Source of the DNA: Heteronotia binoei
Lineage: Eukaryota
Assembly: GCF_032191835.1 (NCBI RefSeq)
Contig: NC_083227.1
Span: 27,714,001 to 27,778,000 of the forward strand
Length of the DNA: 64,000 nucleotides
Reading direction: 5' to 3'
The position numbers and the translations under genes are program-made. Below, one piece after another: positions 14,195 to 47,247 of this stretch (position 1 is the stretch's first letter; each line of letters opens with the position of its first letter). The notes under the pieces were generated by a model. It did no database searches. It was not told where the DNA came from and worked only from the letters and a program-made list of their open reading frames with translations.

Positions 14195-15872
14195 CTGATG
14201 TACCTCCGCTCCATATTTTTATCTAACCCCCTCTTGAAGCTGGCTATGCTTGTAGCCGCCACCACCTCCTGTGGCAGTGAATTCCACATGTTACTCACCC
14301 TTTGGGTGAAGTACTTCCTTTTATCCGTTTTAACTTGACTGCTCAGCAATTTCATCAAATGCCCACGAGTTCTTGTATTGTGAGAAAGAGAGAAAAGGAC
14401 TTCTATTTTCTCCATCCCATGCATAATCTTGTAAACCTCTATCATGACACCCCACAGGCGACATTTCTCCAAGCTAAAGAGCCCCAAGTGTTTTAACCTT
14501 TCTTCATATGGAAACTGTTCCAACCCTTTAATCATTCTAGTTGCCCTTCTCTGCACTTTTTCCAATGCTATAATATCCTTTTTGAGGTGCGGTGACCAGA
14601 ATTGTACACAGTATTTCAAATGAGACCGCACCATCGATTTTTACAGGGGCATTATGATACTGGCTGATTTGTTTTCAATTCCCTTCCTAATAATTCCCAG
14701 CATGGCGTTGGCCTTTTTTATTGTAATCTCACACTGTCTTGACATTTTCAGTGAGTTATCTACCACGACCCCAAGATCTCTCTCTTGGTCAGTCTCTGCC
14801 AGTTCACACTCCATCAACTTGTATTTGTAGCTGGGATTTTTGGCCCCAATGTGCATTACTTCGCCCTTGGCCACAGTGAACCTCATCTGCCACGTTGATG
14901 CCCACTCACCCAGCCTCAACAGATCCCTTTGGAGTGCCTCACAATCCTCTCTGGTTCTCACCACCCTGAACAATTTAGTGCCATCTGCAAACTTGGCCAC
15001 TTCACTGCTTACTCCCAACTCCAAATTGTTTATGAGGAAGTTAAAGAGCATGGGACCCAGTACTGAGCCCTGCGGCACCCCACTGCTTACTGTCCTCCAC
15101 TGCGAAGACTGCCCATTTGTACTCACTCTCTGCTTCCTATTAATTAGCCAGTTTTTGATCCACAAGAGGACCTGTCCTTCTACTCCATGACTCTCAAGCT
15201 TACTAAGGAGCCTTTGATGAGGAACTTTTATCAAAAGCTTTCTGGAAGTCAAGGTAAACAACATCTATTGGGTCTCCTTTGTTCACCCCCTCAAAAAAAT
15301 GGAACAGGTGAGTGAGGCAAGATCTTCCCTTACAGAACCCATGCTGAGTCTTCCTCAATAACCCATGTTCATCAATGTGCCTACTCATTCTGTTCATGAT
15401 AATGGTTTCTACCAACTTTCCCGGTATTGAAGTCAGATTGACTGGCCTGTAATTTCCCGGATCTCCTCTGGAACCCTTTTTAAAGATGGGGGTGACATTT
15501 GCTACCTTCCAGTCCTCAGGAACGGAGGCAGATTTCAATGAAAGATTACATATTTTTGTTAGAATATCCACAAGTTCAACTTTGAGTTCTTTCAGAACTC
15601 TTCGATGTATGCCATCCGGACCTGGTGGCTTATTAGTTTTTAATTTGTCTATCAGTTGTAGGACCTCCTCTCTTGTCACCTCAATCTGACTCAGGTCTTT
15701 CAACACCCCTTCCAAAATAAGTGGTTCTGGAGCAGGCAAGCACTTCTCATCTTCCACAGTGAAGAGGCAAAAAATGGATTCAGCTTCTCAGCTATTTCCC
15801 TATCCTCCTTCAGTAATCCTTTTACCCCTTGGTCATCCAAGGGTCCCACTGCCTCCCTGGCTGGTTTCCTGC

Positions 15873-16493: not shown

Positions 16494-18871
16494 TAGGGTG
16501 GCCAGATCGTCCCGGTTGCCCGGGAAAGTCCCGATTCTGGCTCCCAATTCCCGCCTCCCGGGCTGGCTAAACCGGGACCATTAGAGGTCCCGGTTTAGCC
16601 GGCGGGCCGCGCGCGCGGTCGGGGAAGGCGGCGAGTGAGGGACCGAGTGTCCCTGCGCGTGCGCACGGCGGTGTGGCAGGCTCTGCGCATGCGCGGGGCC
16701 AGGAGAGTGGGCGGCGTAGGGCCCGCCACACCGCCGTGCGCACGCGCAGGGACGCTCGGTCCCTCACTCGCCGCCTTCCCCGACCGCACGCGCGGCCCAC
16801 CGGCTCCTCTCGCTGGCGTAGGGCCCCGGCGGCGGCAGAGGGGGAGGCGGCGGCGGAGGCCGTGGCCGGAGCGGGAGGCAGGCCGGCAGTGCCTGCGGTG
16901 GCGTGGCGGGAGGCCCTGGGTCGGTGGGCTCGGCCGCCTCCTCCTCAGCCGCCGCCAGCAGCACCAGCCGCCACTGCGCCTCCTGGCCAGCCCGCCCGCC
17001 CGGAGGGGAAGCCGTGCCCTGGGAGAAGGTAAGCCGGGCCCGGCAGGCAGGGAGGGAGGGGGCCGAAAGCGGGGGGGGCGGCTGGCGNNNNNNNNNNNNN
17101 NNNNNNNNNNNNNNNNNNNNNNNNNNNNNNNNNNNNNNNNNNNNNNNNNNNNNNNNNNNNNNNNNNNNNNNNNNNNNNNNNNNNNNNNNNNNNNNNNNNN
17201 NNNNNNNNNNNNNNNNNNNNNNNNNNNNNNNNNNNNNNNNNNNNNNNNNNNNNNNNNNNNNNNNNNNNNNNNNNNNNNNNNNNNNNNNNTCCGATGTTCA
17301 TGTCTTGCGGCTCTCAAACATCTGACCTTTATTCTGTGTTGCTCTTTTGTTAAGCAACTCTGGCCACCCCTGGAGTAGACAATACTGACTTTGGTGGACC
17401 CAAGCACTGATTCAGTGTAAGGGAGCTTTGTGTTTGTGTCTTCTGGTGCAATTTTGTTCTCAAATCCTGCATTTACTTCATCAGTATATGGGATAAGGCA
17501 CTTTCTCAACTGTGCTACATAATGCAGCCTATTTATTTTGTCCTGTTTGCTCTGTTGGCTCTATCTGCACCACCTTCATCACTTTCGGGGTGTGGATCCC
17601 CCAGTGGGGTGGGCTCCCGACTCCCTCCGCCGGCTGTTTCTGATAGCCCTGCGCCCCCTCTTTCATTTGATATGTGTCCCGTGCGGGTGCCACCCTCCCG
17701 CCGGGAGATGCCGCAAAATGAGCCCCCTTGAGGCTTATGGCGGCAGGGCTCGGGGGAAGCGAGCTAGACTGCTGTTCTTTTGAGGGGTTATAGAGTGTTT
17801 CGAGCCCGTCCCTGTGGCATCGGTCCCATCGTTGTGGGACCCAGGGGGCCGGCGCAGCGGCCCGCTGAAGCAGCCTGTCGGTCACTTCCGGGTTCCTGTC
17901 CTGCATCTCGACCTGTGTTATTAGTGACAGGCTGCTTCGGCGGGCCGCTGCGCCGGCCCCCTGGGTCCCACAACGATGGGACCGATGCCACAGGGACGGG
18001 CTCGAAACACTCTATAACCCCTCAAAAGAACAGCAGTCTAGCTCGCTTCCCCCGAGCCCTGCCGCCATAAGCCTCAAGGGGGCTCATTTTGCGGCATCTC
18101 CCGGCGGGAGGGTGGCACCCGCACGGGACACATATCAAATGAAAGAGGGGGCGCAGGGCTATCAGAAACAGCCAGCGGAGGGAGTCGGGAGACCACCCCA
18201 CTGGGGGATCCACACCCCGAAAGTGATGAAGGTGGCGCAGATAGAGCCAACAGAGCAAACAGGACAAAAGGGCGGGGTATAAATCTTAATATAAATAAAT
18301 AAATAAATAAATAAATAAAATAGGCTGCATTATGCAGCACAGTCTCACTGGAATCTCACTGGAATCTGACTGGCTTCTCAGCGTGGAACCCGTTCTCTCT
18401 AGTCTTCTCACTTTGAAAAAAGTAAAAAAAAGAGTTTTATTTAACTTTATTTCCCCCTTTCCCTCTCTATAAATAATCTTGGTGTTTCCGGCGGTGATAT
18501 TTGGGGGATTTTTGGGGACGTCACAGGAAGTGCTGTGAAGTCACTTCCTGTTTCCGGCAGTGGCATTTGTGGGAAATGATGTCATTTGTGGGAAATGATG
18601 TCACAGGAAGTGATGCCACTTCCTGCTTCCGGCAGGTGGCGCGGTGAAAATGATGTCACAGGAAGTGATGTCACTTCCTGCTTCCGGCAGGTGGCGCGGG
18701 GAAAATGATGTCACAGGAAGTGATGTCACTTCCTGTTTCCAGCGGTGGCATGCCGTCACTGGAAGTGACGTCACTTCCTGTTTCTGGCGTCTTGCGCTGC
18801 GCGCAGCGCGCACACATTCCTTCCCCCCTCAAGGTGTCCCTGGCTGGCCTGCAGATATTATGGCCACCCTA
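16494..18871. mobile_element. 2.4-kb non-autonomous hAT element nested in the CR1
   Basis: TIRs TAGGGTGGCCA/TGGCCACCCTA and a perfect 8-bp TSD AGTCCTTC at 16486-16493 and 18872-18879. No transposase ORF. GC-rich interior with inverted repeats. Confidence 0.9.
17088..17289. other. Assembly gap (N run)
   Basis: 202 Ns inside the GC-rich hAT interior. Confidence 1.
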
Positions 18872-23326: not shown

Positions 23327-24546
23327 TTACTCCCTTCTGTGAATTCTGTTGTGTGTATTAAAATCTGAACTGCTCCTAAAACCCTTTCCACATTCCATAC
23401 ATTTATATGGCCTCTCGCCTGTGTGGACTCTTTGATGTGTATTAAGGCTTGAGCTCTGATTGAAGCTTTTCCCGCAATCCAGGCATTTATATGGCTTCTC
23501 CCCTGTGTGGATTCTTTCATGTGTTGTAAGGCTTGTATTGATACGGAAGCTCTTTCCACACTCTAAGCATTTATACGGCTTTTCTCCTGTGTGGACACTT
23601 TGGTGTACCTTTAGGTGGGAGCTCTGACTGAAGCCTTTCCCACACTCCTGGCATTTAAAGGGTTTCTCTCCAGAATGCATTCTTCGGTGAGAAATAAGGT
23701 GTGGACTTTGAGAGAAGCATTTCCCACACACTGTGCACTCATAGGGTTTCTCCCCTGAGTGAGTTCTCTGATGTAAAGTGAGGGCTACCTTCCAACTGAA
23801 GGTCCTTCCACACTCCAGGCACTCATATGGCTTCTCCTTTGAGTGAAATTTCTGATGGGAAGTGAGGCACACGCTCCATCTGAAGGTCTTTCCACACTCC
23901 AGGCACTCATATGGTCTCTCCTTTGTGTGGACTCTCTGATGGGAAGTGAGGGCTGTGCTCCAGCGGAAGCTCTTTCCACATTCCAAACATTTATATTGTT
24001 TCTCCTCTGAATGGATTCTCTCATGCGAATTCAAACTGCTCTTATAACTGAACCTCTTGCCACACTCAGAACACTGGCACGGTTTTTGCACTGTGTGGGT
24101 TCTTTTATGGGAAGTAAGGTTTTCACTCAGACTAAAAAGTGTTTTGGACTCTGAACTCATGGAATGTTCTTCCCTCATATGGATTCTCTGGTGAGAAGTG
24201 AGGCTTGCAAACCTGCCAAAGCCCTTTCCACATTCAGAATACTTATACATTTCATCCCCTGTGTGGATTCTCTGATGGGAAGAAGAGCTGGATTCATAAC
24301 TCAAGACATCTCTGCTTTCAGAATGCTTATTCCTTCTCTTTCCTTTGCTGTATTTTTCTTGGGCTGGATTTTCAAGAATGCCAGCTTGGAAAACGACAGC
24401 GTGACTCCCTGAATTTTCTGCTTTGCTTTCTTCCTGCTTCTTTGACAGTTCTGGATTTCTGGAAGGCTTTTTCACCACAACATGGCTGGTCATTACAAAA
24501 GACACCACACAGCCCTCACTATAATTCTCCTCATCCTGGCTGTTAC
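23327..24546 (-). CDS. Gene 2 zinc-finger exon (9 intact fingers)
   Basis: ORF 23327-24508. Acceptor tttcaccag|GT at 24547/24546, phase 1 and in frame. Ends HRRE-TAA. Confidence 0.95.
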
Positions 24547-25180: not shown

Positions 25181-25446
25181 TGTTTGGTATAGTGGTTAAG
25201 TGTGCAGACTCTTATCAGAGACAACCAGGTTTGATCCCCCACTCCACCACTTGCAGCTGCTGGAATGGTCTTGGGTCAGCCATAGCTCTTGTAGAGATGT
25301 CCTTGAAAGGGCAGCTTCTGGGAGAGCTCTCTCAGCCCCACCTACCTCACAGGGTGTTTGTTGTGGGGGAGGAAGATAAAGGAGATTGTGAGCCGCTCTG
25401 ACGCTCTCAAGAGTGGAGGGTAGGATATAAATCCAATACCATCATC
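25181..25446 (+). mobile_element. Squam3-like SINE in the KRAB-ZNF intron of gene 2
   Basis: Same consensus, plus orientation, (ATC)n tail. Confidence 0.82.
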
Positions 25447-25763: not shown

Positions 25764-25890
25764 CCAGAGAGGCCACAGTCCTGTAATTCTCCACCATGAC
25801 TTCTCTATACAAAACCCTCTGGTCAGGAGTCAGCAGCACCCACTCCGCTGTCGTGAAACGCACAGCCACCTCCTCGAAGGAAATTGGATG
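25764..25890 (-). CDS. Gene 2 KRAB-A exon
   Basis: 127 bp with canonical AG/GT. Translates [42 protein letters not shown]+G. Confidence 0.95.
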
Positions 25891-26544: not shown

Positions 26545-26627
26545 CTGAGCGAGCTGCATCTTAAATGTTTCCACTCCACTCCAAAGAAAAGACATTCTGG
26601 AACCCGACTCTAATGCTCTTCCACTAC
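26545..26627 (-). CDS. Gene 2 linker/start exon
   Basis: 83 bp, open throughout in phase 1: (G)SGRALESGSRMSFLWSGVETFKMQLAQ. Conserved ATG at 26559 plus an upstream in-frame ATG. Predicted protein 453 aa from the conserved ATG. Confidence 0.8.
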
Positions 26628-26835
26628 CTGTAGGGAGATATATATATATATCTTCAGTGGTTTACTTCCTTCAGACCTCCTCTTTCTCCTCAAAGCGGAG
26701 CAAAAAGTGGTTTAAATGACTCTCTTCTCCTCCATTCTCTCCTCAGACAAAGGTAGGTAAGTCAGAGACCATACAACTAATCCAAAGCCAGCCAGGAACC
26801 TTTAGTGGCTGAGTGGACATTTGAACCTCCTAGAT

Positions 26836-27444
26836 CAGGGGTGTCAAACATGCAGTTTGGGGGCCAAATCAGGCCCCTGGAGGGCTACTATCAGGCCCCC
26901 GAGCAACTGGCTGTCATCTGCTTCCTTCTCCCTCTCTCTTGCTTCCTTCTGCATAACAGCTTGCTTTGCCAGGCTTGCTCAATTGCACAGGAGCTACAGA
27001 GCAAAACCTCTATTTTCTCCATTGGCTGAGGCTCCTCCCTTGGGGAGGAAGGGGAGAGGAATAGCTTGCTTTGCCAGGCTCTCTCAGTTGCACAGCAGAA
27101 CTACTGGGCCAAACCTCTCTTCCTGCTACTGACTGAGGCTTCCCACCCATCCCAGCCCGTGGGGAAGGAAGGAAAAAGCCAGAGCTTCCTTTGCCCAGTT
27201 CCCATGGGAGAAATACAAATAAAGCACCTTTAAGACCCATGAGTACTAATGTTTTAAGCATGTTTTAAGTTTTTAAAAATATATATGTGTTCTTTATAAA
27301 ATCTATATCTTTGCTACCTAATCTTAAATAGGTACCCACATGGCCCAGCCCGACATAGCTCAGTCCAACCCGACATGGCCCGGCCCCTCAAGGTCTCATT
27401 TATGTCAGATGTGGCCCTCATAACAAGCGAGTTCAACACCCCTG
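26836..27444. mobile_element. hAT-Charlie-type MITE
   Basis: TIRs CAGGGGTGTCAAAC/GTTCAACACCCCTG and TSD TCCTAGAT at 26828-26835 and 27445-27452. Empty site at ~45866 in gene 3. Confidence 0.9.
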
Positions 27445-27987
27445 TCCTAGATCCTAGCCAGAGACTCTGTCCATGAAACCACACTGGCTCTGAGGGCTCA
27501 GAGAAATTCTTAAAAGTTCCTTTGTTTTAAATGAGGAGGTATTTCCACTCTCCCTGTCTGCCTTCCCCCCCCCCCCCCCCACAACAGGGTACTTGTCAGC
27601 AGCTTCTGCTGTTCCCCTCATTTTATCCTCTGTAAAATAGGGTAAACTGAGTGTGCATAACCCGCTCAGCTTCCATGGTAGAGAGGGCATTAGAACCTCA
27701 GTCTCCCAGATCACCTCCCCAGGTTTTGACTTTCTCAGGGAGGGAGAGACTGAAGGGAGAGAGAGACACCCACATGCAGGACTTACTTTAAAAGTGAGGC
27801 CTACTCTGCACGTCTGATGGGCCCAGAATCTCACAGCACCGATAACTTCAGCTGGTGAATACCAAAACAACTCAATGCCAAAACAGTCCAGTATTTGACT
27901 CCCTCAGACATGTTTCTTGACACTAGGTCTCTGTCCAAAGCGGGGATGATTACATGGAAGCCATGCTGGGTCTCTGACTGCCAGAGA

Positions 27988-28140
27988 AGATGATGATGAT
28001 GATATTGGATTTATATCCCACCCTCCATTCCGAATCTCAGAGCGGCTCACAAGCTCCTTTATCTTCCTCCCCCACAACAGACACCCTGTGAGGCGGGTGG
28101 GGCTGAGAGGACTCTCACTCCCTTTCAAGGACAACTTCTG
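27988..28140 (-). mobile_element. Partial Squam3-like SINE
   Basis: 3' half of the SINE with (ATC)n tail, interrupting the paralog of the 6753-6947 block. Confidence 0.8.
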
Positions 28141-29520
28141 CCACTCTAACTTAATTTTACGATATTCTGTAATCTATTTACTCATTAACTGGACACTTTT
28201 GTACACATTACTTAATAAATCACCACTTTCCTTAATTTCCTGGAACTCAGTGCCTGGATAGGGGAAAAATAGTTCACTTTAGATTATCAAAAAAGATACA
28301 TACTATTAAGAAGATCTGCACTCATTTTATTTGCTGCTAACCTAATCTGTCGAGTTAGTTTTCCAAGTAAAAATATATTGTGCATAGTGTTCCCTCTAAG
28401 ATGAGTTTATGTGAGCTAGCTCAGTTTTTTAGCCTCTGGCTCACACATTTTTTGTCTTAGCTCAGCCTTCTAAGGAAAGATGGCCCCTGAGCACACTAAT
28501 TTAGGCAGTAGCTCACAACTTTAATGCCTGTAGCTTTGCAAAGTGTAATTTTTGCTGGCAACTTAGAGGGAACATTGAAGGCAGTCAAAAACCCCCACAC
28601 AATCCTTAATTGAATTGCACCTGTTTTTACTTACCCCCACCCAGTTTCTATTTCTCTCTTGTTTTAATTACTCCTCCCCCCAGAAACAACACACACACCC
28701 TTCGCCCCACCACACCCTGTCTCCAAATTGCACCTGAAAACTCTGTGCTTCCAACCAGACCTTCTAAACCAAACCTCTCCAAAGTTCCTGCACAAAGAGT
28801 TCTTCTGCACGTGGGAAACAGGGAAGCCGGAGGGTGCATTTGCAATTCATACCTCCAACCCCCCCTTCCTCTCTAGGGATTTCGATCTTGCTTTTTTTAA
28901 CCCTAGGAGCACCCAAAAGCTCAGTCTTTTACGGAGGATGAGCCAAATCAGGATTGAATCCTGGGCTGGGAAGCGGCTTTTTTGGAAGAGAGACCAGCAA
29001 GGAGGAGAGGGAGAAGAACCTAGGATTTTCCTAGGCAGGCTAGCAGCAGCAACCTCCCCACCACCCCTGCAAAATATGGCGGAAAATGCATTTGGGTGAA
29101 AAGGGATTTGCAATACCAGGAGTTGGAGGGGAACAGCAAGTGGGGGGGGGGAGGGGCGGGCAGAGCCCGAGTTTTATTTTTTTAGGGCTCCGAACAATCT
29201 TGCAACATGCGCTGCCCCCTTCCCGGCACATTCCTCCTCCCACACATACCATCTCAGGAGCCACGCAAAAAAGTTCACGCCGATTCTGAAATTACTCATC
29301 CACACACTGCATGGGTGGGAAATGCCTGCCTTTGCAAGATGGGTGTAATAACAACCACCCGGCTGAGATTCCACACGCTGGTTTGCTAACCACCTTGCAA
29401 CTGGCTTGGTCAATCAAAAAGGGATTCGCCTGTTAAATGCTCACTTACCAACGCAGTTGCAAACGTTGGACCCATTCACTTTAAAACGTTATTTCCCCAG
29501 CCTTTTTTCATTTCACTTAC

Positions 29521-29788
29521 TTCATTATGTTGGATAGATCCAGGTGGGCACCGGTCTGAAGCAGGAGAACAAAGCAGGAGTCCAGGGGCACCTTTCAGAC
29601 CAACAAAGTGGGAAAGCTGCAGCGCTGCAGTCCAAACTCTGCTCACGACCATGCAAGTTGCAGCCAGCGGATCCCGCCAGAGGAAGCAGCCGCGTTTGCC
29701 CAGCAGCCTTTTGGAGCTTTGCTTTTCCTTTCACAAGAAGTATCCCCTCCCGCCTGCCCATGCGCAAGGAACTCTGGGACTTGTAGTT
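29521..29788 (-). promoter_or_regulatory. Gene 2 putative promoter and non-coding first exon
   Basis: Donor |gtaagtga at 29521/29520. AACTACAAGTCCCAG at 29774-29788 next to an NRF1-like GCCCATGCGCA. Confidence 0.65.
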
Positions 29789-29847
29789 CCATGACTTCAT
29801 TGTGTCATGTCGCCTCTTTCTTTGGCCTCACTCAGGGGTCCGTTCCC

Positions 29848-30120
29848 AGCCAGTGTGGTGTAGTGGTTAAGTGTGCGGACTCTTATCTGGGAGAACTGGG
29901 TTTGATTCCCCACTCCTCCACTTATGCTGCTGGAATGCTGGGTCAGCCATAGCTCTGGCAGGGGTTGTCCTTGAAAGGACAGCTGCTGTGAGAGTCCTCT
30001 CAGCCCCACCCACCTCACAGGGTGTCTGTTGTGGGGGAGGAAGGGAAAGGAGATTGTGAGCTGCTCTGAGACTTTTGAGTCGAGGGCGGAATATAAATCC
30101 AATGTCATCGTCGTCTTCTT
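29848..30120 (+). mobile_element. Squam3-like SINE immediately upstream of the gene 2 promoter
   Basis: Same consensus, plus orientation. Confidence 0.85.
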
Positions 30121-30658
30121 CCATTCAGCTGGCTCAAAACATCAGCTGTTTATTTTGCAAGAAGACAACTTCAAAAACCGACAACTTCAGCCAACATACA
30201 AAACTGAAACTAGAGCTCCTCCCCATGAGATCAAATCAAACCACACAAATACCAGAGGAGGAGCAGATTGTTCCATTACATGCAACCAATGTTCCCTCTA
30301 AGTGGCAGTCTTGTGAGCAAAAAAATCTACTTTGTGAGCTACTGGTGTTAAAGTTTTGAGCTGCTGTTTAAATTATTGTGTTCTAGGGTCATCCTTCCTG
30401 AGTTAAGACAAAAATGTGTGAACTAGCTCACACTAACTCAGCTTAGAGGGAACACTGCATTCAACAGGTATACAGTAAATATACCACAGTGTAGAATGGT
30501 AGATTGGAATGTATTTCTCTGGCCTGGGGACAGGGGAGCTAACTCTACACAGCCAATCACCCCACTTCAAAAAAGGTGGCCTCCACATGCGAGAGACAGA
30601 CAGAGCGTAGTGGCAGGATCTCAGTTAATCTCAGTATTCCATAATTAAGGAAACATGC

Positions 30659-30829
30659 CAGGGGTGGAATTCTAGCAGGAGCTCCTTTACATATTACGCC
30701 ACAAACCCCTGATGTAGCCAATACTCCAAGAGCTTACAAGGCTCTTTTTTGTAAGCTCTTGGATGATTGGCTACATCAGGGGTATGTGGCCTAATATGCA
30801 AAGGAGTTCCTGCTAGAATTCCACCCCTG
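30659..30829. mobile_element. Palindromic MITE (~170 bp)
   Basis: CAGGGGTGGAATTCTAGCAGG...CCTGCTAGAATTCCACCCCTG, self-complementary along almost its whole length. A related piece is at ~60625-60820. Confidence 0.85.
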
Positions 30830-31446
30830 GAAACACCTACCCATCAACCACCAAATGTCGATATATTTTCTTCACTGTATTTTATCCCAGACTTAAATCC
30901 AAACAAATGGTAACCATATAAACTAAGCTTATTATTCCTGTTTAGTTCTAGAATGTTCAACATCTTCATTACGCTGCATGCTAATCTGCTCATCCTCTAC
31001 TTTCATTGTGTGTGTGCAGATGAAAGTTTATCCCTTGGATAAAATTTTGCTGTTCTTAAAGGTGCCCCTGGACTCCAACTTTGTTCCGCTGCTTCAGACT
31101 CACAGTTACCCACCTGAACCTGTTTGATATTGTCTATCTAAAGGGGGGAAAGCAGGGCTTTCTTTGTGGTGAGCCTTTTGAGAAGGTTCTCCTAAGTCCT
31201 GAGTGGAGCTGGTAGAAATCAGAGCAACCTTATATACAGGGGAATTTCTGGATGCATACCTGGGGATTTTGGGGTGCAGTCTGAGGTTTGGGAAGGGGAG
31301 AGACTTCAATGGGAAATAACGCCATAGTGTCCACCTTCTGAAGTGGCCATTTTCTCCCATTGACCTGATCTCAGCCACCTGGAGATGAGCTGTAACTAAT
31401 CCCAGGAGATCTCCAGCCACCACCTGGAGGCTTACATATGATCATT

Positions 31447-31728
31447 GGAGAGTTCGGTGTAGTGGTTAAGTGTGCGGACTCTTATCTGCGAGAACCGGGT
31501 TTGATTCCCCACTCCTCCACTTGCACCTGCTAGCATGGCCTTGGGTCAGCCATAGCTCTGGCAGAGGTTGTCCTTGAAAGGGCAGCTGCTGTGAGAGCCC
31601 TCTCCAGCCCCACCCACCTCACAGGGTGTCTGTTGTGGGGGAGGAAGGTAAAGAAGATTGTAAGCCGCTCTGAGACTCTTCGGAGTGGTGGATGGGATAT
31701 AAATCCAATATCATCATCATCTTCTTCA
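31447..31728 (+). mobile_element. Squam3-like SINE
   Basis: Same consensus. Confidence 0.85.
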
Positions 31729-32095
31729 TTGTCACTGACTTTTTAAACAGCAACAAAAACACTGGGGAACACAAACCTCCCTGTTCTTTAGATGCATTCA
31801 AGACTTTCATTTAACTACGCTTCCTCCTCTATTTTGCTAGATGATTTCTGGTTATTTAAAAAACTAACACTGCAAAAATGAAATGTGTTGGTTTTTTCTT
31901 GTTCAAACCATCTGTGACTTTTGAAAATTCTTCCTTTCTTTGCTGTCCCTTGCCAAACCGTATTTACGATGTACCAAACCTGCACTCAAAATTTATATTA
32001 CTCCCTCAACGCTTCCGTCATCCCATTTCTTCCTTTCCGTGCTATTTCAATCTTATATAAAATCACCTTTCTACTGAAGCAACTCATAAGGTATC

Positions 32096-32969
32096 TGTGG
32101 CGGAACCGGCCCGATTCTGACTTCAGACCCGGTCCCGTCAGCTCCCTATTGAGTCGCCAACTCCTGGAGGGAGCTATTCCTCCTCCTCCCCTTGGGCTCG
32201 CTGCCACCACCTGCTCAGTCCCGGGGTTCAGATTGAGAGGAACAGGACTCCCAATCCCCCTCTCCTGCTATGAGGCTAGGCCTCAAGGTCCTCTGCCACC
32301 CTGCACTTGGGTTTCACAGAGACCTCAGCGCTTCTTTGGGGCACCCCTGGAGGATTGGCACCTTATCCAACTGCATGCCTTCCCCCTTCCCCGGGGCCCC
32401 CTTCTCAAAACAGCGTGGTCTAAAGCGGTCTGGGGATCTAGGTGGTACAGAGATTGATTGCCAGCATTTAAACAGTAAAAATATATTTATTTAAAAAGAG
32501 AAAAAGATAGGAAAAGGAAAACAAACCAAAAACAGTTGCCTTTAAAAAGTTAACACAGCCTAGTACAGCACAACACAGCTCAGCAAACAGCATAACAAAA
32601 TAAAGGTGGTTTTTAAACGCATCGTATTGTCCCTGGTCTATACTTGATCTGCCTAAGAGAATGACTTACTTTGTCTTACTGCCTGGAGGCCTCATTTTCC
32701 TGAGCAGGCCCCCCACAGGCCGGAGCTCAGAGGCAAGCAGCCTCTCTTCCCGAGCCTCTGCTGCAAACTGAGAAACTCTTCCTGCCTAGCACATGGCAAG
32801 AACAACAGCCCTTCCTGCCTCTCTAGGAGACTTTCCCCCTAGCGTTGTTGGTTTGGCTCAGGAAGGGAGGGGGGGAGTGAGGGGAAGGCTACAAAGCCTG
32901 CTGAATGGATTTACTGATCCCTGCCTTTTTGGATGAAGCACCAACACTCTCAGATGGCGTTTCTCCACA
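32096..32969 (-). repeat. 3' LTR (874 bp)
   Basis: Direct repeat of 35611-36483, preceded on the minus strand by the PPT AAGGAGGGGGAAG. Confidence 0.97.
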
Positions 32970-33163
32970 CTTCCCCCTCCTTAAATTCTGAGCCAGAGGG
33001 GTTGCCTCCTACAGAGGTGACCCCGTAGCAGAATCCAAACAAACAAGGAGAAACCCATTAACCAAAACATTACACAAACATTCAGGTATTTCTCCAATAA
33101 TACACAAAGTCCAGCACCCTAGGTGCCCATGTCCTTTCTGGCCAACAAGTCGCATTGCTGCAT

Positions 33164-35461
33164 TCAGAAGGAATGTCCAGTCTTTAAGATGTACTCCTCC
33201 GTCTCCCAGGACCACCTCTGGAGTTTGGTGCTCTCCCTCCGTTGCTGCTGTTGCTGGGGTGAGGGGTCCATCAAAGGAGGAAATCCCTGGCCCCACATAT
33301 GGGGTTGGAAACTGCCCAGTTCCCACACAGTTGCTTCTTCTTTATCCTTCATTGGTGGAATGTTCCCTCTGTCCACTCTGTCCTCCCAGAAAACCACCTC
33401 TGGGGCTCCAAACAATTGCTGTCCCAGCTTCTTTTTGTCTCCTTCCTTCCTACCTCTATGCAACACCATGGACCTCGCAGAGACTGGCTGTGGTACATTC
33501 ACCTGCACCACTTGAACTGCCTTTCCCATTTTCTCCATAGCCCCCACACAGGTAGCATCGTCTAGGTCATCCACAATCACATGGGGTCCCTCCCATTCCA
33601 CTTTCCGTTCACCAGTATGAAGGGGTAGGAAATCCATCACCCTATCCCCTGTCTCAACTTCTGAGAACTCCACTTCCTGGTCCCTTGCCAACTCACACAG
33701 TGGTTCCAGCCTCGGGTCACTTTGAACCTCAGACAGGAACATTTCTGGCTGCCCCAGACTTCCTATCATCTGTTCCTTCAAGCCACCCCTAGTCCCACTG
33801 TTTCCAGAACACTCAGCCAAAGTTTGATCTGGGTTCTCCACCCCCTCAGTTGGTTTTTCAGTGTCAGCCAACTGAGCTCCTTCCTGCCTGGAAGTCTCCA
33901 CCGCATCCTGCTGCCCTTGCGGAAATTGGCACCCCTCTTCCCATTGGGCACACCCTCCTGCAGAGCTTGAGACAGGCTGGTCCTCCCCCTCCCTAGTTAG
34001 TGGTGAGGTGGCTTCCCTAAAGTTGCCTTCCTCCCCCCACCTTCCCCTGAGGGTTTGGCTTGGGTTCTCAGTCCCCTCGGTTGGTTTCTCAGCACTACCA
34101 AACTGACCCCCCTCTTGCTTGGAAGGTCCCACAGCTTCCCAGGACTCCTGTCTGCCCTGCTTCAAGACGACCTGTTTTGAGAGCGTCTCGGACGATCCCA
34201 CTTCCTGATCCACAGCTACTTGGTGAACCGGTTCCAACCTAAGGCCACTCCAGACCTCCTTCTGGAACCGCTCCCGTTCCCCCAAGCCTTCAGCTATGTG
34301 CTCCTCTGAGCCCACATTAGCCTTGCTGCTCTCAGAACCTCCTGTGAAATCTCCACTCTCCACCTTGGTCTCTTCAGCTTGCACATCCTTTATGCTAGAC
34401 AGGTTCCCTTCCTCGCTAGGAACATCCACAGCCTCCTGCTGCACTTGGGGAAAGCTACACCCCTTCTCCCCTTGAGAACACCCTACTCCAGGGCTTGAGA
34501 CAGGCTGGTCCTCCCCCTCCTGGGTGACTGCCCTCTCTTCGTCCTCAGTAACCTGGGTTGTTTCCCCCTCCCTGGTTGGTGGTGAGGTGGCTTCCTTAAA
34601 GTTGCCTTCCTCCTCCCACTTTCCCCTGGGGGTTTGGCTGTGGGTTACAGCATTGATAGAGTACTGGCCAACCAACAAATCCCGGCCCAATAACACTGGA
34701 ACTGTTTGTTCCTTCATTACCCCACATTCAGAATAGGATTTACCTTCTTGTGGAGCCAAACCCCTGAACTGCTTTCGGGAGTGGTCTGGCCCCAGTTTAA
34801 ACCTTTTAAATACAGTGGCCTTATAGGCCGCAAAAGTTATCCCCCCATCTTCCACAGGCATGCTGTAATAGATGGCTGAAAGCTCTCCAGTCAGGTTGCT
34901 ACAGAGGTAAGACATATAGTCCTCCTCTGCAATCCCCCACTGTTTGGCTGCCCTCTCAAAGTTGGAGAGGTACATGGAGGGGTCTTCTCCCTCTTTGTAC
35001 ACTGCAAAGTCTTTGGGGGTGACTTGGATCTCTTTGCTTAGTTCAGCTTCCAGACGTAGCACCTCAAGCTCATGGCGACGTTGCTCTTCCTGTTCCCGTC
35101 TGCGGATATCAGCTCTCTCTTTTTCTTCCTGTCTGCGGATCTCAGCTTTCTCTCTTTCCTCCTGCCGGCGGATCTCTGCTTCTTCCTGTCTGCGGATCGC
35201 ATCCCTCTCTGCTTGTCGTTCCTCTCTCTCTCGTTCCTCCTTGATACGCATTCTCTCCAGTTCCATCTGTAGCCGCAAGGTTGCTTCTGACTGGGTGGGG
35301 GCCACTTTTGCAGGTGCCCCTGCATGCTCAAGATGCTCCAACAGGAGGACTTGCATATCTACTACAGTCAGGTTGTCACACTCCAGCTCTTGCTTTGCGC
35401 ACTCTTCCTGGAGCTGTGGCTTTGTCATCTTCAGGATTTCCAGTTTCTTAGCACGCTCCAT
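33164..35461 (-). CDS. 765-aa retrotransposon polyprotein remnant (Gag N-terminus, PR end, repeat linker, IN GPY/F tail)
   Basis: E/R coiled coil, capsid-like YKEGEDPSMYLSNFERAAKQWG...LTGELSAIY...FKLGPDHSRKQFRGL, protease C-terminus VPVLLGRDL, and GPY/F-like GDRVMDFLP...WEGPHVI. RT, RNase H and the integrase catalytic core are absent. Confidence 0.8.
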   Translation of the reverse strand: MERAKKLEILKMTKPQLQEECAKQELECDNLTVVDMQVLLLEHLEHAGAPAKVAPTQSEATLRLQMELERMRIKEEREREERQAERDAIRRQEEAEIRRQEEREKAEIRRQEEKERADIRRREQEEQRRHELEVLRLEAELSKEIQVTPKDFAVYKEGEDPSMYLSNFERAAKQWGIAEEDYMSYLCSNLTGELSAIYYSMPVEDGGITFAAYKATVFKRFKLGPDHSRKQFRGLAPQEGKSYSECGVMKEQTVPVLLGRDLLVGQYSINAVTHSQTPRGKWEEEGNFKEATSPPTREGETTQVTEDEERAVTQEGEDQPVSSPGVGCSQGEKGCSFPQVQQEAVDVPSEEGNLSSIKDVQAEETKVESGDFTGGSESSKANVGSEEHIAEGLGERERFQKEVWSGLRLEPVHQVAVDQEVGSSETLSKQVVLKQGRQESWEAVGPSKQEGGQFGSAEKPTEGTENPSQTLRGRWGEEGNFREATSPLTREGEDQPVSSSAGGCAQWEEGCQFPQGQQDAVETSRQEGAQLADTEKPTEGVENPDQTLAECSGNSGTRGGLKEQMIGSLGQPEMFLSEVQSDPRLEPLCELARDQEVEFSEVETGDRVMDFLPLHTGERKVEWEGPHVIVDDLDDATCVGAMEKMGKAVQVVQVNVPQPVSARSMVLHRGRKEGDKKKLGQQLFGAPEVVFWEDRVDRGNIPPMKDKEEATVWELGSFQPHMWGQGFPPLMDPSPQQQQQRRESTKLQRWSWETEEYILKTGHSF

Positions 35462-35590: not shown

Positions 35591-35608
35591 ATCCCACCGC
35601 TGCCGCCA
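35591..35608 (-). other. Primer-binding site complementary to the tRNA-Leu(AAG/UAG-type) 3' end
   Basis: TGGCGGCAGCGGTGGGAT lies 2 nt after the 5' LTR. It matches 17/18 to the recalled tRNA-Leu end ATCCCACCGCTGCCACCA. Confidence 0.8.
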
Positions 35609-35610
35609 AG

Positions 35611-36483
35611 TGTGACGGAACCGGCCCGATTCTGACTTCAGACCCGGTCCCGTCAGCTCCCTATTGAGTCGCCAACTCCTGGAGGGAGTATTCCTCCTCC
35701 TCCCCTTGGGCTCGCTGCCACCACCTGCTCAGTCCCGGGGTTCAGATTGAGAGGAACAGGACTCCCAATCCCCCTCTCCTGCTATGAGGCTAGGCCTCAA
35801 GGTCCTCTGCCACCCTGCACTTGGGTTTCACAGAGACCTCAGCGCTTCTTTGGGGCACCCCTGGAGGATTGGCACCTTATCCAACTGCATGCCTTCCCCC
35901 TTCCCCGGGGCCCCCTTCTCAAAACAGCGTGGTCTAAAGCGGTCTGGGGATCTAGGTGGTACAGAGATTGATTGCCAGCATTTAAACAGTAAAAATATAT
36001 TTATTTAAAAAGAGAAAAAGATAGGAAAAGGAAAACAAACCAAAAACAGTTGCCTTTAAAAAGTTAACACAGCCTAGTACAGCACAACACAGCTCAGCAA
36101 ACAGCATAACAAAATAAAGGTGGTTTTTAAACGCATCGTATTGTCCCTGGTCTATACTTGATCTGCCTAAGAGAATGACTTACTTTGTCTTACTGCCTGG
36201 AGGCCTCATTTTCCTGAGCAGGCCCCCCACAGGCCGGAGCTCAGAGGCAAGCAGCCTCTCTTCCCGAGCCTCTGCTGCAAACTGAGAAACTCTTCCTGCC
36301 TAGCACATGGCAAGAACAACAGCCCTTCCTGCCTCTCTAGGAGACTTTCCCCCTAGCGTTGTTGGTTTGGCTCAGGAAGGGAGGGGGGGAGTGAGGGGAA
36401 GGCTACAAAGCCTGCTGAATGGATTTACTGATCCCTGCCTTTTTGGATGAAGCACCAACACTCTCAGATGGCGTTTCTCCACA
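35611..36483 (-). repeat. 5' LTR (873 bp)
   Basis: By eye it differs from the other LTR only at one substitution (tgtga/tgtgg) and one 1-bp indel (gagtattcc/gagctattcc). Confidence 0.97.
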
Positions 36484-36595
36484 GTATCTTTAAAAAAAAT
36501 TAAAGCACAGGAATTACAATTAAAAAGAGACTTTTCCTGCTTTATTTTGTAGCATGGCCACAGGATGATTTGCAGACATTTGGAAACAGGTTTTG

Positions 36596-38418: not shown

Positions 38419-40734
38419 CAGGACTGGATAAACAATTAGGCAAATGAAGCACTTGACTATGGGGCCCCCCGTGGCCAGCTTTCCCCCCCCCCCCCGTTGG
38501 CCCTTTCCCCTCAGCTTACCTGCCTCGCCTCCTCCCCATCGCTTCCCCCTTCGTCCGCCCACCCCTTCCCTCCCCTCATTGCTGCTTCCCTGCTGTTCGT
38601 AGCTTCCCTCTTCACCTGACCCCTCCCCCTTGCTTTCTTCTTTGTCCACCTGTCCAGCCTCCTCCCCATCTGCCAGCCCAGCCCCAGGGAAACCCATCTC
38701 TGGAATGAGAAAACCGCTTCTGCGCTTGCAAGGCACTTTCGGCCGAGTTGGGCGGGGAGGGGAGGGAAGCCGTCTGGGCTCTGGTTGAGTGGTGGGCAGC
38801 GGGCACAGGACACTTCCCCCCCCCCCAAAGGCAGAAATCTGAATCGCCCGCAGCTAAAGAAAGTAGGAAAACCAGCCAGGCAAGCTGGCTCCATCCTTCG
38901 CAGCTCCTCAGCCCCTCTTCTGCAGCTGGCAGCGCCAGGCCAGCCAACATTGGCTCTCGTTGGGACAGGGAGAGAGATGGATTGGGCTGGCAAAATCGCT
39001 GCAAAGCTTCCTGCCTTGGGAGCTTGCTTCCCCGCCTCCCTCGGGAACTTGCAGGCTGCCTCTATCAGTACCAGAGGACAGATTTTTTTTAAAGTTCCCT
39101 TTGCTCTTTCGGCTGCCTCTGCTCTTTCTATCAAGTCCAGATGAGGGGGGCGGGGAAGACAACAACTTCCTTTCGTTCCCTGGGGAGGGGGAAGGGAGAC
39201 AGCGGAAAGACCAAGTTGTGCCGGAGTGCCTTGAGAAGCCCAGCAAAGTTTCCCTCCAGGTTTTGTGTGCAGTGCTTCTCTGAGATGGATGCTCCAGAGC
39301 CTCCAGTCAGTTCAGCAAAAGAGTCCTGTTTGTTTCTGTGATTCAGACTGGTTTGCAGGTTCTCTTTCAGTAGCAGAGGTAGGCCCTGCGCTAAGGGTGA
39401 AATGTATTTGGGAGCGGAGGCAAAAGGCGGCCGCGGGAAGACAACGGCGGCTGCGGGCAGGCGACAGAAGGTGGCAGGAAGACAGAGGCAGCTGCAGGAA
39501 GGTGGCAGGAAGGCAAAGGCAGCTGTGGGGAGGTGGCAGGACGGTGGTGGGAAGGCGGCAGCAGCTGCGGGGAGGCGGCGGAAAGTTATTATTTTTTATT
39601 ACTTTACATTTCTATCCCGCCCTCTCCGCAAGCGGACTCAGGGCGGCTAACAACATTCATTTTTACAAATTAACCAATAAAAAGCTAGTTTAAAATTATT
39701 TAAAAACATTTCATTTCATGGTGCTGTATCACTACAGTATAATATAAGTGGTGATCATGGTACTCTATATTGATGTATAGAGGCAGCAGCGGCTTCGGGG
39801 AGGTGGTGGGAAGGCTGCGGCAGCTGCGGGGAGGTGGCGGGAAGGCAGCAGCAACTGTGGAGAGGCAGCGGAAGACAGCGGCGGCTGCGGGAAGGCGGAG
39901 GCAGCTGCGGGAATACAGCAGCACCTGTGGTGAGGCGGCAGGTGGCAGCTCCTGCAGGAAGGTGGCGGGAAGGCAGCAGCGGCTGCGATGAAAGACAGTG
40001 GCGGCTGCAGGAAGGTGGCTGCGGGAATGCAGCAGCACCTGCGGGGAGGCAGCAGAAGATTGTGGCAGGAAGGTGGCGGCGGCTGCAGGGAGGCTGTGGA
40101 AGGCAGCAGCAGCTGTGGGGAGCAGGCGGAAAGTGGTGGGAAAATGGCAGCGGCAGCAAGAAGGCAGCCGCGGCTGTGAAGAGGTGGTGGGAAGGCAGCA
40201 GCGGCTGTGGAGAGGCGGCCAGCCTTATTCCTTGTGCTGCAGGGGGCTCTCTCACTGGTCTCTCCAGTAATCCTGACTTCATTTTCCTGCTCTGTCCTGT
40301 GTGAGGGTCTGCTTGACATCCCTGTCCTGCTTTAGCCATTCCAGACAGTTCAGCAGACGCAATATAGACTCCATCAAGGCTGGCCCCACCTGGCAGCCAA
40401 CTATAATCAACATTTCACATGAACACAGACATGAAGCTGCCTTATATAGATGAAGGGGAAATATAAGGGGCGCCATTTCCCCCCCCCCCTTAAAAATATG
40501 TAGATCCGGCCCTGTCCCCACAGCTTTGTCAAAGAGGCTTTTGAGGTTGCCAGCAGGCTGCAGTGGGGCAGACGCTAAGTCTCTGAGATAATTGGCAAGA
40601 CCCACCCCCCCCAGAGTTTGACTGCCTAGGGGTGTAGGCAGTGGGGTGGGTGCTCCAACTTGGAGATAGTTTGCGAGGGGGCCCCCCAAGATTTCAACTG
40701 CCTAGGGTCCTCCACAGGGTTTAATCCGGCCCTG
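38419..40734. mobile_element. 2.3-kb non-autonomous hAT element with GC-rich minisatellite
   Basis: Imperfect TIRs CAGGACTGGATAAAC / GTTTAATCCGGCCCTG and a perfect 8-bp TSD TGGCTGAA at 38411-38418 and 40735-40742. Empty site attcagctgaataccagg at ~22430. Confidence 0.85.
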
Positions 40735-42391: not shown

Positions 42392-43614
42392 TTACTCCCT
42401 TCTGTGAATTCTGTTGTGTGTGTTAAGGTCTGAACTGCACCTAAAATCCTTTCCACATTCCATACATTTATATGGCCTCTCACCTGTGTGTACTCTTCGA
42501 TGTGTATTAAGGCTTGAGCTCTGACTGAAGCTTTTCCCACAATCCAGGCATTTATATGGCTTCTCGCCTGTGTGGATTCTTTCATGTGATGTAAGGCTTG
42601 TCTGGACACTGAAACTCTTTCCACACTCCAAGCATTTATATGGCTTTTCTCCTGTGTGGCTTCTTCGGTGTATATTCAGGTGTGTGCTCTGACTGAAGCC
42701 TTTCCCACACTCCTGGCATTTAAAGGGTTTCTCTCCAGAATGCATTCTTCGGTGGGAAATAAGGTGCGGACTCTGAGAGAAGCATTTCCCACACACTGTG
42801 CACTCGTAGGGTTTCTCCCCTGAGTGAGTTCTCTGATGTGAAGTGAGGGATGCGCTCCAACTGAAGGTCCTTCCACACTCCAGGCACTCATATGGTTTCT
42901 CCTTTGTGTGGAATCTCTGATGGGAAGTGAGGCACGTGCTCCATCTGAAGGTCTTTCCACACTCCAGGCACCCATATGGTCTCTCCTTTGTGTGGATTCT
43001 CTGATGGGAAGTGAAGCCTGCACTCCAACGGAAGCTCTTTCCACATTCCAAACATTTATATTGTTTCTCCTCTGAATGGACTCTCTCATGCAAATTTAGA
43101 GAGCTCTTACAGCTGAATCTCTTGCCGCACTCTGAACACTGCCATGGTTTTTGCCCCGTGTGGGTTCTTTGATGGGAAGTAAGGTTTTCACTCAGACCAA
43201 AAGTATTTTCACACTCTGAATTCTCAGATGGTTCCTTTCTCTTATGGATTCTCTGGTGAGAAGTGAGGCTTGCAAGCCTGCCGAAGGGCTTTCCACATTC
43301 TGAGCATTTGTACGTTTCATCCCCTGCATGGATTCTCTGGTGGGAAGAAAAGCTGGATTCACAGCTCAAGACTTCTCTGCTTTCAGAATGTCTATACCTC
43401 CTTTTTCCTTTGGCACATGGTTCTTGGGATAGCTTTTCAAGAAGGATGCCAGTGTGGAAAACTACAGACTGATTCTCTGACTTCTCTGCCTTGCTTTCTT
43501 CCTGCCTCTTAGACTGTTCTGGATTCCTGGAAGGCTTTTCCGCCACTTTATAGCAGGCCATTATGAAAGAGACCACACAGCGCTCACTATAATTCTCATC
43601 ATCCTGCCTGTTAC
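42392..43614 (-). CDS. Gene 3 zinc-finger exon (10 intact fingers)
   Basis: ORF 42392-43576. Acceptor ttccatcag|GT at 43615/43614, phase 1 and in frame. Ends HRRE-TAA. Confidence 0.95.
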
Positions 43615-47108: not shown

Positions 47109-47247
47109 ATAGATATTGGAGCCTGCGATTCCCGCCAGACGAAACCGCCACACTTGCTCCAGCGCACTTCCGGAGCTTTGCTTTCCCTTTCCCACTGGGT
47201 ATCCCCTCCCCCCCGCCCATGCACAAGGAACTCTGGGAGTTGTAGTC
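47109..47247 (-). promoter_or_regulatory. Gene 3 putative promoter and non-coding first exon
   Basis: Donor |gtaagtga at 47109/47108 and GACTACAACTCCCAG at 47233-47247. Confidence 0.65.

Follow-up and report, generated by a model that had tools for sequence, protein, structure and literature searches.

The origin of SCAN-KRAB-ZNF proteins was set out by Emerson and Thomas (2011), and the summaries of that account in PMC4592553, PMC3406341 and bioRxiv 10.1101/2025.03.03.638093 give as the proposed starting layout a Gmr1-like element lying upstream of a KRAB-ZNF gene in the same orientation. Capture of SCAN is thought to have been a single event, and the Gmr1-like elements themselves, which carry integrase ahead of RT-RH, are depleted in reptiles other than turtles (bioRxiv 10.1101/2025.03.03.638093). 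Transcripts that start in an LTR and run into a neighboring gene are a well-documented class (for example PMC4056533). In lizards and a turtle, RefSeq models fuse host exons to a Gmr1-like capsid (TRIM-Gag, GRTP1-Gag). Finally, non-autonomous LTR elements of the LARD/TRIM type keep LTRs, primer-binding site (PBS) and polypurine tract (PPT), are devoid of enzymes, and are mobilized in trans.

The locus described here touches on all of these systems. Within the window, meaning the whole 64,000-nucleotide stretch analyzed, a Gmr1-like element lies upstream of a KRAB zinc-finger (KZNF) gene, gene 2, in the same orientation, as in the proposed SCAN-KRAB-ZNF layout; SCAN, however, corresponds to the C-terminal lobe of the capsid, which is deleted here, and a join would bring in the N-terminal lobe and a coiled coil instead. 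The element has an intact pair of LTRs on the strand of gene 2 and contains donor-like sites, with a natural acceptor further along, which recalls the LTR-initiated chimeric transcripts; membership of that class, however, depends on RNA having been observed, and the likeness here is one of DNA layout. LTRs, PBS and PPT are kept and enzymes are absent, as in LARD/TRIM-type elements, except that a long unbroken gag-derived ORF takes the place of non-coding filler. In the TRIM5-like models XP_042304474.1 (Sceloporus undulatus) and XP_053159221.1 (Hemicordylus capensis), this capsid N-lobe (39-43% identity) is likewise attached to domains of host type, but with reverse polarity, host RING/B-box being upstream and gag downstream; moreover, they retain the SCAN-like lobe, accompanied in the 766-aa Hemicordylus model by a CCHC knuckle, and have neither KRAB nor fingers. 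The reading that we favor, with a probability of about 0.8, is that a young non-autonomous Gmr1-like element inserted near an ordinary KZNF gene, and that the match in phase between gag codon 240 and exon 2 of this gene is a coincidence.

Table 1. Features of the LTR element and of gene 2, in the direction of transcription (window coordinates; a slash marks a splice boundary).
Feature	Positions	Strand	Remarks
Target-site duplication GATAC, upstream copy	36484..36488	minus	Direct reading; same 5 bases at other end
LTR element	36483-32096	minus	In spacer that separates two KRAB zinc-finger paralogs arranged in tandem
5' LTR, TG...CA	35611..36483	minus	873 nt; local alignment with 3' LTR
PBS-like 18-mer starting TGG	35591..35608	minus	Two bases past 5' LTR; direct reading
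Single 765-aa ORF of element	33164..35461	minus	All segments homologous to gecko relative P0001 share its one frame
Gag part, aa 1-250	34712..35461	minus	BLASTP against P0001 residues 1-250, 54% identity
Donor-like 9-mer AAG/GTAAAT	34738..34746	minus	Exon end would be 34744, phase 1, codon 240; approximate-matrix score 4.69
Protease end and protease-integrase spacer, aa 246-437	34151..34726	minus	Aligns with P0001 487-702
Diverged internal duplicate of spacer, aa 468-601	33659..34060	minus	52% aa identity, dS 0.87
Integrase C-terminal SH3-like remnant, aa 594-673	33443..33682	minus	Matches P0001 1012-1091, a segment that Pfam assigns to Integrase_p58_C / SH3_Tf2-1
RNase H tail remnant	33128..33364	minus	tblastn against P0001 1189-1271; downstream of integrase remnant
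PPT, 13-nt purine run	32970..32982	minus	Abuts 3' LTR; direct reading
3' LTR	32096..32969	minus	874 nt; AATAAA from 32491
Target-site duplication GATAC, downstream copy	32091..32095	minus	Direct reading
Gene 2 promoter motif ACTACAAGTCCCAGAGTTCCTTGCG	29763..29787	minus	Kept upstream of paralogs 1 and 3
Putative non-coding exon 1, gene 2	29449..29750	minus	Start inferred; donor TTG/GTAAGT after 29449
Exon 2, gene 2	26545..26627	minus	83 nt; 5'UTR and conserved start ATG 26559-26557 (MQLAQ)
KRAB-A exon	25764..25890	minus	127 nt, phase 0 to phase 1; Pfam KRAB E = 5.1e-20; splice sites by direct reading
Zinc-finger exon	23327..24546	minus	Starts phase 1; spacer, 2 degenerate and 9 canonical C2H2 fingers, stop codon

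A young, non-autonomous Gmr1-like element

The element is a young, recently inserted LTR retrotransposon and, taken overall, a real and ordinary one (Table 1). It has the hallmarks of the class, also found in Gmr1-like Ty3/Gypsy (Metaviridae) elements, namely near-identical direct repeats with TG..CA ends and a 5-bp target duplication, together with a PBS-like tract after the 5' LTR and a PPT before the 3' LTR. Local alignment of the LTR pair gives 872 matches (872/873 identical), 1 mismatch and 1 single-base indel, and the 5' LTR holds an AATAAA and a donor-like AAA/GTAAGT at 36183. The PBS-like 18-mer may resemble the complement of the 3' end of a tRNA-Leu.

Searching 1.84 billion (1.84e9) representative proteins with HMMER, using residues 140-250 of the ORF as query, yielded 117 relatives, the best of which is XP_048357553.1 of Sphaerodactylus townsendi (71% identity). 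These relatives carry SCAN-like CA, CCHC, PR, IN, RT and RNase H, ordered as in Gmr1; IN precedes RT in P0063 and P0100, and P0063 runs on into RNase H. Downstream of the capsid region homologous to that of our element, relatives have a domain that matches Pfam SCAN, which in the closest relative, the gecko protein P0001, spans residues 227-314 (E = 2.6e-11), and P0001 likewise has integrase ahead of RNase H. In the element, too, what is left of integrase comes ahead of what is left of RNase H, matching the IN before RT-RH order of full-length relatives. Judged from its sequence, the element is Gmr1-like (Ty3/Gypsy-type), as originally predicted; RT, by which members are grouped with the Gmr1 clade in phylogenies, is deleted from this copy.

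The ORF has been through three internal deletions and one old internal duplication, each of which left the frame intact (BLASTP and tblastn). One in-frame deletion fuses gag to the protease end and removes the counterpart of P0001 251-~486, which is the remainder of the SCAN-like lobe through to the end of the protease and, in related elements, includes the CCHC knuckle and the protease; the zinc-binding and core domains of integrase are also deleted (BLASTP/tblastn against P0001). The gag part that remains consists of a short N-terminal helical domain, an 86-residue helix (a coiled coil that contains an 11-aa tandem repeat), the capsid N-terminal lobe, and no more of the SCAN-like C-terminal lobe than its first helix. 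The AlphaFold2 model of this part has a pLDDT of 92.5, and its best fold matches are retroelement capsids, although weak ones (E ≥ 0.15). Pfam assigns no family to the whole 765-aa ORF at E ≤ 1 and gives only chance-level non-retroelement matches (E ≥ 1) for two ORF pieces at E ≤ 10; SCAN is not among the Pfam matches to the ORF even at E ≤ 10, the lobe being cut after about 24 residues. The ORF has no Pfam retroelement catalytic domain, and of the enzymes only end fragments align with P0001; the element is non-autonomous, without protease core, integrase core or RT. It thereby differs from Gmr1-like elements, which have these parts and CCHC, as it also does in its duplicated spacer and in being a very young copy in a squamate-type genome, given the reported depletion in non-turtle reptiles.

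The persistence of one frame through these rearrangements raises the question of whether the ORF functions in its own right, as a gag-like protein that rides on or interferes with autonomous Gmr1-like particles or as an open frame needed for copying, in which case the adjacency of gene 2 would be irrelevant. Support for this idea is also provided by the dN/dS of 0.42 between the duplicate spacers, a value that comes from just 132 codons, and by the 71% identity of the capsid N-lobe to that of the gecko relative. Against it, the gene model P0001 may have been drawn around defects of its own, and since the insertion is very young, the fact that the frame has stayed open from that time is uninformative. 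We regard a function of this kind as unlikely.

Gene 2 and its start-codon exon

In its predicted structure, gene 2 is an ordinary KZNF gene of four exons: a non-coding exon 1, a start-codon exon 2, a KRAB-A exon and a finger exon. Its promoter motif, which resembles a ZNF143/Staf binding site, has counterparts that differ at no more than 2 positions ahead of paralogs 1 and 3 (10109-10133 and 47222-47246) against a chance expectation of 0, and putative exon 1 is drawn from the paralog-conserved blocks 29435-29520 and 29658-29787. The element shares the strand of the gene and ends at 32096, 2309 bp from the motif at 29787, in agreement with the roughly 2.3 kb of the original prediction. KRAB-A followed by a tandem C2H2 array makes gene 2 a KRAB zinc-finger gene; it is not of the SCAN-KRAB-ZNF type, even when the joinable piece of gag is counted with its exons, since Pfam SCAN is absent from both.

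Exon 2 begins after an acceptor AG at 26629-26628 and closes in phase 0 at CAG/GTAAGG. The original prediction placed an acceptor at 26627 and an exon open in the required phase behind it, and both are borne out: past the first two bases the exon reads SGRALESG...MQLAQ and is stop-free. The same prediction took this exon for a "linker", which is corrected here. The exon consists of 5'UTR and the conserved start codon, five codons ahead of its end, and an MQPTQ motif ahead of KRAB-A is also present in a Sphaerodactylus KZNF model. Paralogs 1 and 3 have a TGA in the needed frame, 8 codons before the conserved ATG, and among the three paralogs compared the frame is therefore open in gene 2 only, which has TGG (26583-26581) at the site of this TGA. 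A further in-frame ATG, at 26595-26593, is private to gene 2.

The same arrangement would permit an effect of the element on the regulation of gene 2 rather than on its protein, with the 3' LTR (or transcription that runs on from the 5' LTR) acting as alternative promoter or enhancer or interfering with the gene 2 promoter. Any chimeric RNA would then have a non-coding first exon supplied by the LTR and joined to exon 2, and its translation would begin at the native ATG as before. An intact second copy of the 5' LTR, the 3' LTR, stands just 2.3 kb from that promoter, any upstream exon would be tolerated because the native ATG lies inside exon 2, and known LTR-initiated chimeric transcripts, that well-documented class, mostly change the 5'UTR and not the protein. 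KZNF clusters, however, are often heterochromatic, and we hold a regulatory effect to be quite improbable.

The candidate junction between gag and exon 2

The original prediction envisaged a phase-1 donor at gag codon 240 that would splice in frame into gene 2, and the underlying arithmetic is correct, as are all of its coordinates and frames. Codon 240 is GGT (34744-34742), the 239 codons before it are stop-free, and Gag1-239, exon 2, KRAB-A and the nine fingers can be joined in frame; the piece that would be joined is indeed coiled coil plus capsid N-terminal part and not a full SCAN (BLASTP, Pfam, AlphaFold2 model), the SCAN-like domain contributing no more than about 14 residues. The donor-like site fits the consensus at 8 of 9 positions. 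Scored with an approximate matrix, which is not MaxEntScan, it equals or outscores accepted donors of the gene family (3.7 for KRAB-A TGG/GTAAGG and 3.8 for gene 1 exon 2 CAG/GTAAAG, the latter likewise without the +5 G), and by the same approximate matrix 68 of the 6233 GT sites in the window (1.1%, a density of about 0.5 per kb per strand) reach or exceed its score. The ORF, however, has three donor-like sites of about equal score, one per phase, of which the codon-240 site is one, and the in-frame fit is about what chance predicts.

These features bear on the proposal that 5' LTR transcripts splice gag codon 240 to exon 2 and are translated as Gag(1-239)-KRAB-9 fingers, a present-day replay of SCAN-KRAB-ZNF capture. 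The parts lie on one strand, in the right order, with an exact fit of frame and no stop in any piece; the site ranks in the top 1.1%; host exons joined to a Gmr1-like capsid are predicted elsewhere, as noted above; and the long coiled coil of gag could supply the self-association that is SCAN's role. Against this, the exon to be joined is 5'UTR in the gene family and closed by TGA in the paralogs, two further ORF sites score equally, and so little of the SCAN-like lobe would be kept. Moreover, the intron would span 8.1 kb and hold the 3' LTR, six poly(A) hexamers, the gene 2 promoter and the strong exon 1 donor, and KRAB or C2H2 fingers occur in 0 of the 117 relatives, so that none of these proteins joins the gag N-lobe to either. 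A chimera, whose frame was checked exon by exon on the DNA, would be possible but is unsupported, as is the fresh gag capture that had been put forward, and we consider use of the junction very improbable. The private loss of TGA and the extra in-frame ATG of gene 2 could be read as more than coincidence, but the fullest form of the proposal, in which LTR transcripts exploit this 5'UTR stop loss in a live domain-capture intermediate, giving a KRAB-ZNF with gag coiled coil and capsid N-lobe as self-association or capsid-binding module, an independent non-SCAN replay of SCAN-KRAB-ZNF birth possibly aimed at Gmr1-like particles or DNA, is the least credible of all.

In the reading that we favor, the young element inserted between the tandem paralogs with a 5-bp target duplication, 2.3 kb upstream of the conserved promoter of gene 2 and in the same orientation. 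Its ORF keeps the gag N-terminus and, still in frame, small pieces of protease, of the integrase C-terminus and of RNase H; every catalytic domain and nearly all of the SCAN-like capsid C-terminal lobe are lost, and the element was presumably copied in trans by autonomous relatives. The GTAAAT of codon 240 is most likely mere coding sequence (Gly-Lys codons), and its phase match with exon 2 was helped by the fact that gene 2 alone lost the upstream 5'UTR TGA. Read-through splicing from gag into exon 2, if there is any, is expected to be rare.

A recent Gmr1-like insertion within a KZNF cluster

At this locus a non-autonomous Gmr1-like element inserted very recently into a genome of squamate type, in which elements of the clade are reportedly scarce, and so recent an insertion of an element of this kind implies that autonomous partners were recently active. 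The element sits, moreover, within a KZNF cluster, a kind of locus thought to police such elements. If the junction with gene 2 were used after all, the first step of the textbook capture of gag by a KRAB-ZNF gene could be watched in a living species.

Structure, age and identity of the element

The element upstream of gene 2, a KRAB zinc-finger (KZNF) gene, is a complete and very recent insertion. Its two LTRs are identical at 872 of 873 positions, with one additional single-base indel, and GATAC is duplicated at both ends of the element. An 18-mer beginning TGG comes after the 5' LTR, a 13-nt purine run directly adjoins the 3' LTR, and no further LTR copy was found elsewhere in the window. 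At the rates usual for vertebrates, the LTR divergence (1 substitution per 873 bp) suggests that the insertion is much younger than a million years.

The gag portion of the open reading frame (ORF) could not be named from Pfam alone because no retroelement family matched the whole ORF or either half of it. A PDB sequence search with gag residues 1-239 returned chance-level matches only and no SCAN domain, and a word-index protein search with ORF residues 1-240 was blank. Treating this blank as a sign of absence was rejected, since HMMER later found a relative of 1273 aa, inside the permitted length range and 54% identical across the region of gag residues 1-240. The candidate list had probably been filled by words from the low-complexity coiled coil, and a blank word-index result on a low-complexity query is not evidence of absence. 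Exhaustive HMMER comparison of ORF residues 140-250 with 1.84 billion representative proteins identified 117 relatives, the top-ranked being that same 1273-aa protein, XP_048357553.1 from the gecko Sphaerodactylus townsendi (71% identity, with matching residue positions), and the second a Gekko kuhli protein. With geckos supplying its nearest proteins, the window has a squamate-like character. Pfam places a SCAN-like domain in the relatives right after the matched lobe, followed by a CCHC knuckle, protease, integrase, reverse transcriptase (RT) and RNase H. Integrase ahead of RT is the Gmr1-like order (bioRxiv 10.1101/2025.03.03.638093).

When the ORF was aligned to the S. townsendi protein by BLASTP and tblastn, every piece proved homologous to it in a single frame (Table). 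The Pfam SCAN domain of the gecko protein spans residues 227-314, and the deletion junction in the ORF sits at a short VMK motif common to both sides. Because the pieces map to this relative in one frame with domains missing, sequence comparison indicates that the element is Gmr1-like but non-autonomous. The ORF has been deleted internally in three places and carries an old duplication of the spacer, yet it keeps its frame throughout and has no catalytic domain; the spacer duplicates (aa 275-425 vs 468-601) give a dS of 0.87 and a dN/dS of 0.42. Between the element and gene 3 lies a GC-rich minisatellite with a period of about 31 (39456-39895, within 38.3-40.3 kb), which yields long spurious ORFs on both strands.

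Table. Features of the element, its ORF and gene 2 (nucleotide positions in the window unless residues are stated)
Feature	Position	Strand	Details
5' LTR	36483-35611	minus	LTR pair alignment; TG start, CA end
Element ORF	35461..33164	minus	765 aa
3' LTR	32969-32096	minus	LTR pair alignment; TG start, CA end
Small helical domain	residues 2-47		AlphaFold2 model; three helices, ahead of coiled coil
Single helix	residues 57 to 142		AlphaFold2 model; holds 11-residue tandem repeat
Four-helix lobe	residues 161-220		AlphaFold2 model
One additional helix	residues 225-234		AlphaFold2 model
Region collinear with gecko protein	ORF residues 1-250		gecko residues 1-250
Deleted from ORF	gecko residues 251 to about 486		rest of SCAN-like lobe through end of protease
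Protease end and protease-integrase spacer	ORF residues 246-437
Second, diverged spacer copy	ORF residues 468-601
Integrase zinc and core domains			missing from ORF
Integrase C-terminal SH3-like piece	ORF residues 594-673
RNase H tail	ORF end
25-nt promoter motif of gene 2	29787-29763	minus	2309 bp downstream of element
Same motif, ACTACAAGTCCCAGAGTTCC-type	10109-10133, 29763-29787, 47222-47246	minus	upstream of three paralogs
Gene 2 exon 2	26627-26545	minus	83 nt; acceptor AG 26629-26628; phase-0 end at CAG/GTAAGG
Gene 2 KRAB-A exon	25890-25764	minus	classical 127 nt; Pfam KRAB E = 5.1e-20
Gene 2 last exon	24546-23327	minus	phase-1 start; two degenerate and nine canonical C2H2 fingers

The gag segment and host-gag models

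The AlphaFold2 model of gag residues 1-239, built on a 50-sequence alignment, has a mean pLDDT of 92.5. Its N-terminal domain (aa 2-47; 35320-35461), which is shared with the gecko relative and has no match in a Pfam search, looks SAP-like. A fold search with the model gave no match at E <= 0.001; the best matches, weak at E 0.15-3, are all to retroelement capsid lobes (dArc1, PEG10, PNMA2, Ty1, HIV), and are supportive only. Alignment with the gecko protein puts the start of the SCAN-like lobe near ORF residue 226. Of the ~88 residues of that lobe, about 14 would be retained by a cut at residue 239, in agreement with the original prediction that the gag piece comprises a coiled coil and the N-terminal part of the capsid, without a full SCAN domain.

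Neither pattern matching for KRAB or C2H2 motifs nor phmmer searches that took the KRAB and finger exons of the window as queries (E <= 10) identified a KRAB domain or zinc fingers in the 117 relatives, a negative that covers cluster representatives, so that a model inside a 50% cluster may escape. Host-gag chimeric models do occur, with a TRIM5-like protein joined to capsid in two lizards and GRTP1 joined to gag in one turtle. In RefSeq, the Sceloporus undulatus TRIM5-like isoform X2 (P0003; 587 aa) has a RING and a Gmr1-like capsid (N-lobe and SCAN-like lobe), and the Hemicordylus capensis model (P0004; 766 aa) has a RING, a B-box, a Gmr1-like capsid and a CCHC knuckle. These two lizard models are possibly TRIM-Gag restriction-factor-like genes or annotation artefacts. 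In both, gag is downstream of the host part, the reverse of the polarity proposed for a Gag-KRAB-ZNF protein.

The proposed junction and the start of gene 2

Splicing from gag codon 240 into a "linker exon" of gene 2 had been proposed to yield such a Gag-KRAB-ZNF chimera. The ORF, donor-like site, acceptor, exon 2, KRAB-A and finger exons all lie where that proposal placed them, and, read exon by exon, the frame agrees with no stop in the pieces. Codon 240 is GGT at 34744-34742, within the 9-mer AAG/GTAAAT, so that cleavage after 34744 would give a phase-1 end; no stop occurs in the first 239 ORF codons, and exon 2 past its first two bases reads SGRALESG...MQLAQ without a stop to a phase-0 end. 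Using an approximate matrix, based on published vertebrate frequencies rather than on MaxEntScan, the codon-240 site scores 4.69, a value equalled or exceeded by 68 of 6233 GT sites in the window, or about 0.5 per kb per strand. Three donor-like sites near this score are present in the ORF, at 33502 (phase 0), 34040 (phase 2) and 34743 (phase 1). A phase-0 donor matches the KRAB-A exon and a phase-1 donor matches exon 2 or the finger exon; an in-frame partner therefore exists for two phases out of three. The codon-240 site is plausible because its score is no worse than those of accepted donors of the KZNF family (3.7 for KRAB-A and 3.8 for CAG/GTAAAG of gene 1 exon 2 in the same matrix), yet it is not distinguished. 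The proposed 8.1-kb intron would span the complete 3' LTR along with six poly(A) hexamers, the gene 2 promoter and the strong exon 1 donor.

Four tandem KZNF paralogs, all on the minus strand, are present in the window (456-1943, 23327-24508, 42392-43576 and 55659-57359), and the gene 2 unit aligns collinearly with the gene 3 unit and in part with that of gene 1. All three paralogs compared have an exon 2 of 83 nt. In the frame required for the chimera, gene 3 reads ...SPL, a stop and then GGVETFKMQPTQ, and gene 1 reads ...SPF, a stop and then GGVETFKMQPTQ; gene 2 alone has TGG (26583-26581) where genes 1 and 3 have TGA, and it carries a private in-frame ATG at 26595-26593. Given the TGA codons of genes 1 and 3, the conserved start is the ATG five codons ahead of the exon 2 end (26559-26557 in gene 2), with the remainder of exon 2 being 5'UTR. 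A Sphaerodactylus KZNF model has MQPTQ immediately ahead of KRAB-A. The supposed linker is thus a start-codon exon, with TGA in the same frame in two paralogs. An upstream coding exon entering exon 2 in phase 1 was rejected because the paralogs carry TGA in that frame. The chimera would need translation through a stretch that normally serves as leader.

The 25-nt motif of gene 2 is found upstream of genes 1 and 3 with <=2 mismatches (chance expectation 0), and is likely to be a shared promoter element of the KZNF family in the window; it resembles a ZNF143/Staf site. An insertion of ~137 bp in the putative exon 1 region of gene 2 (29521-29657), absent from paralogs 1 and 3, is probably a small repeat because parts of it recur in the window, e.g. 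at 31046-31099 and 2676-2731. A tRNA-derived SINE (about 270 bp) is present many times in both orientations, with 83-96% identity between copies (25182-25446, 29848-30120, 31451-31730 and at least six others), and some copies lie in gene 2 introns or immediately upstream of its promoter. LINE reverse-transcriptase ORFs at 14008-15757 and 48232-49206 (minus strand) are broken by N runs; the window has runs of N at 14030-14194, 17088-17289 and 48262-48433, all kept unfilled. When the finger exon was the query of a word search, the matches were generic KZNFs, of which the best (Sphaerodactylus) is 50% identical. Genes 2 and 3 end at ...HRRE and a stop, genes 1 and 4 run on into more fingers, and finger-like sequence (PFKCLQCGK) persists past the stop of gene 2.

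With the element upstream of gene 2 on the same strand, the locus matches the starting layout proposed for the origin of SCAN-KRAB-ZNF genes. Half of the insertions between tandem genes fall on the strand of the gene, however, so this layout alone is expected. The observation behind the original prediction is confirmed and its interpretation is partly supported as to anatomy, while functional capture by gene 2 is unsupported; the locus is a young non-autonomous Gmr1-like retrotransposon beside an ordinary KZNF gene.
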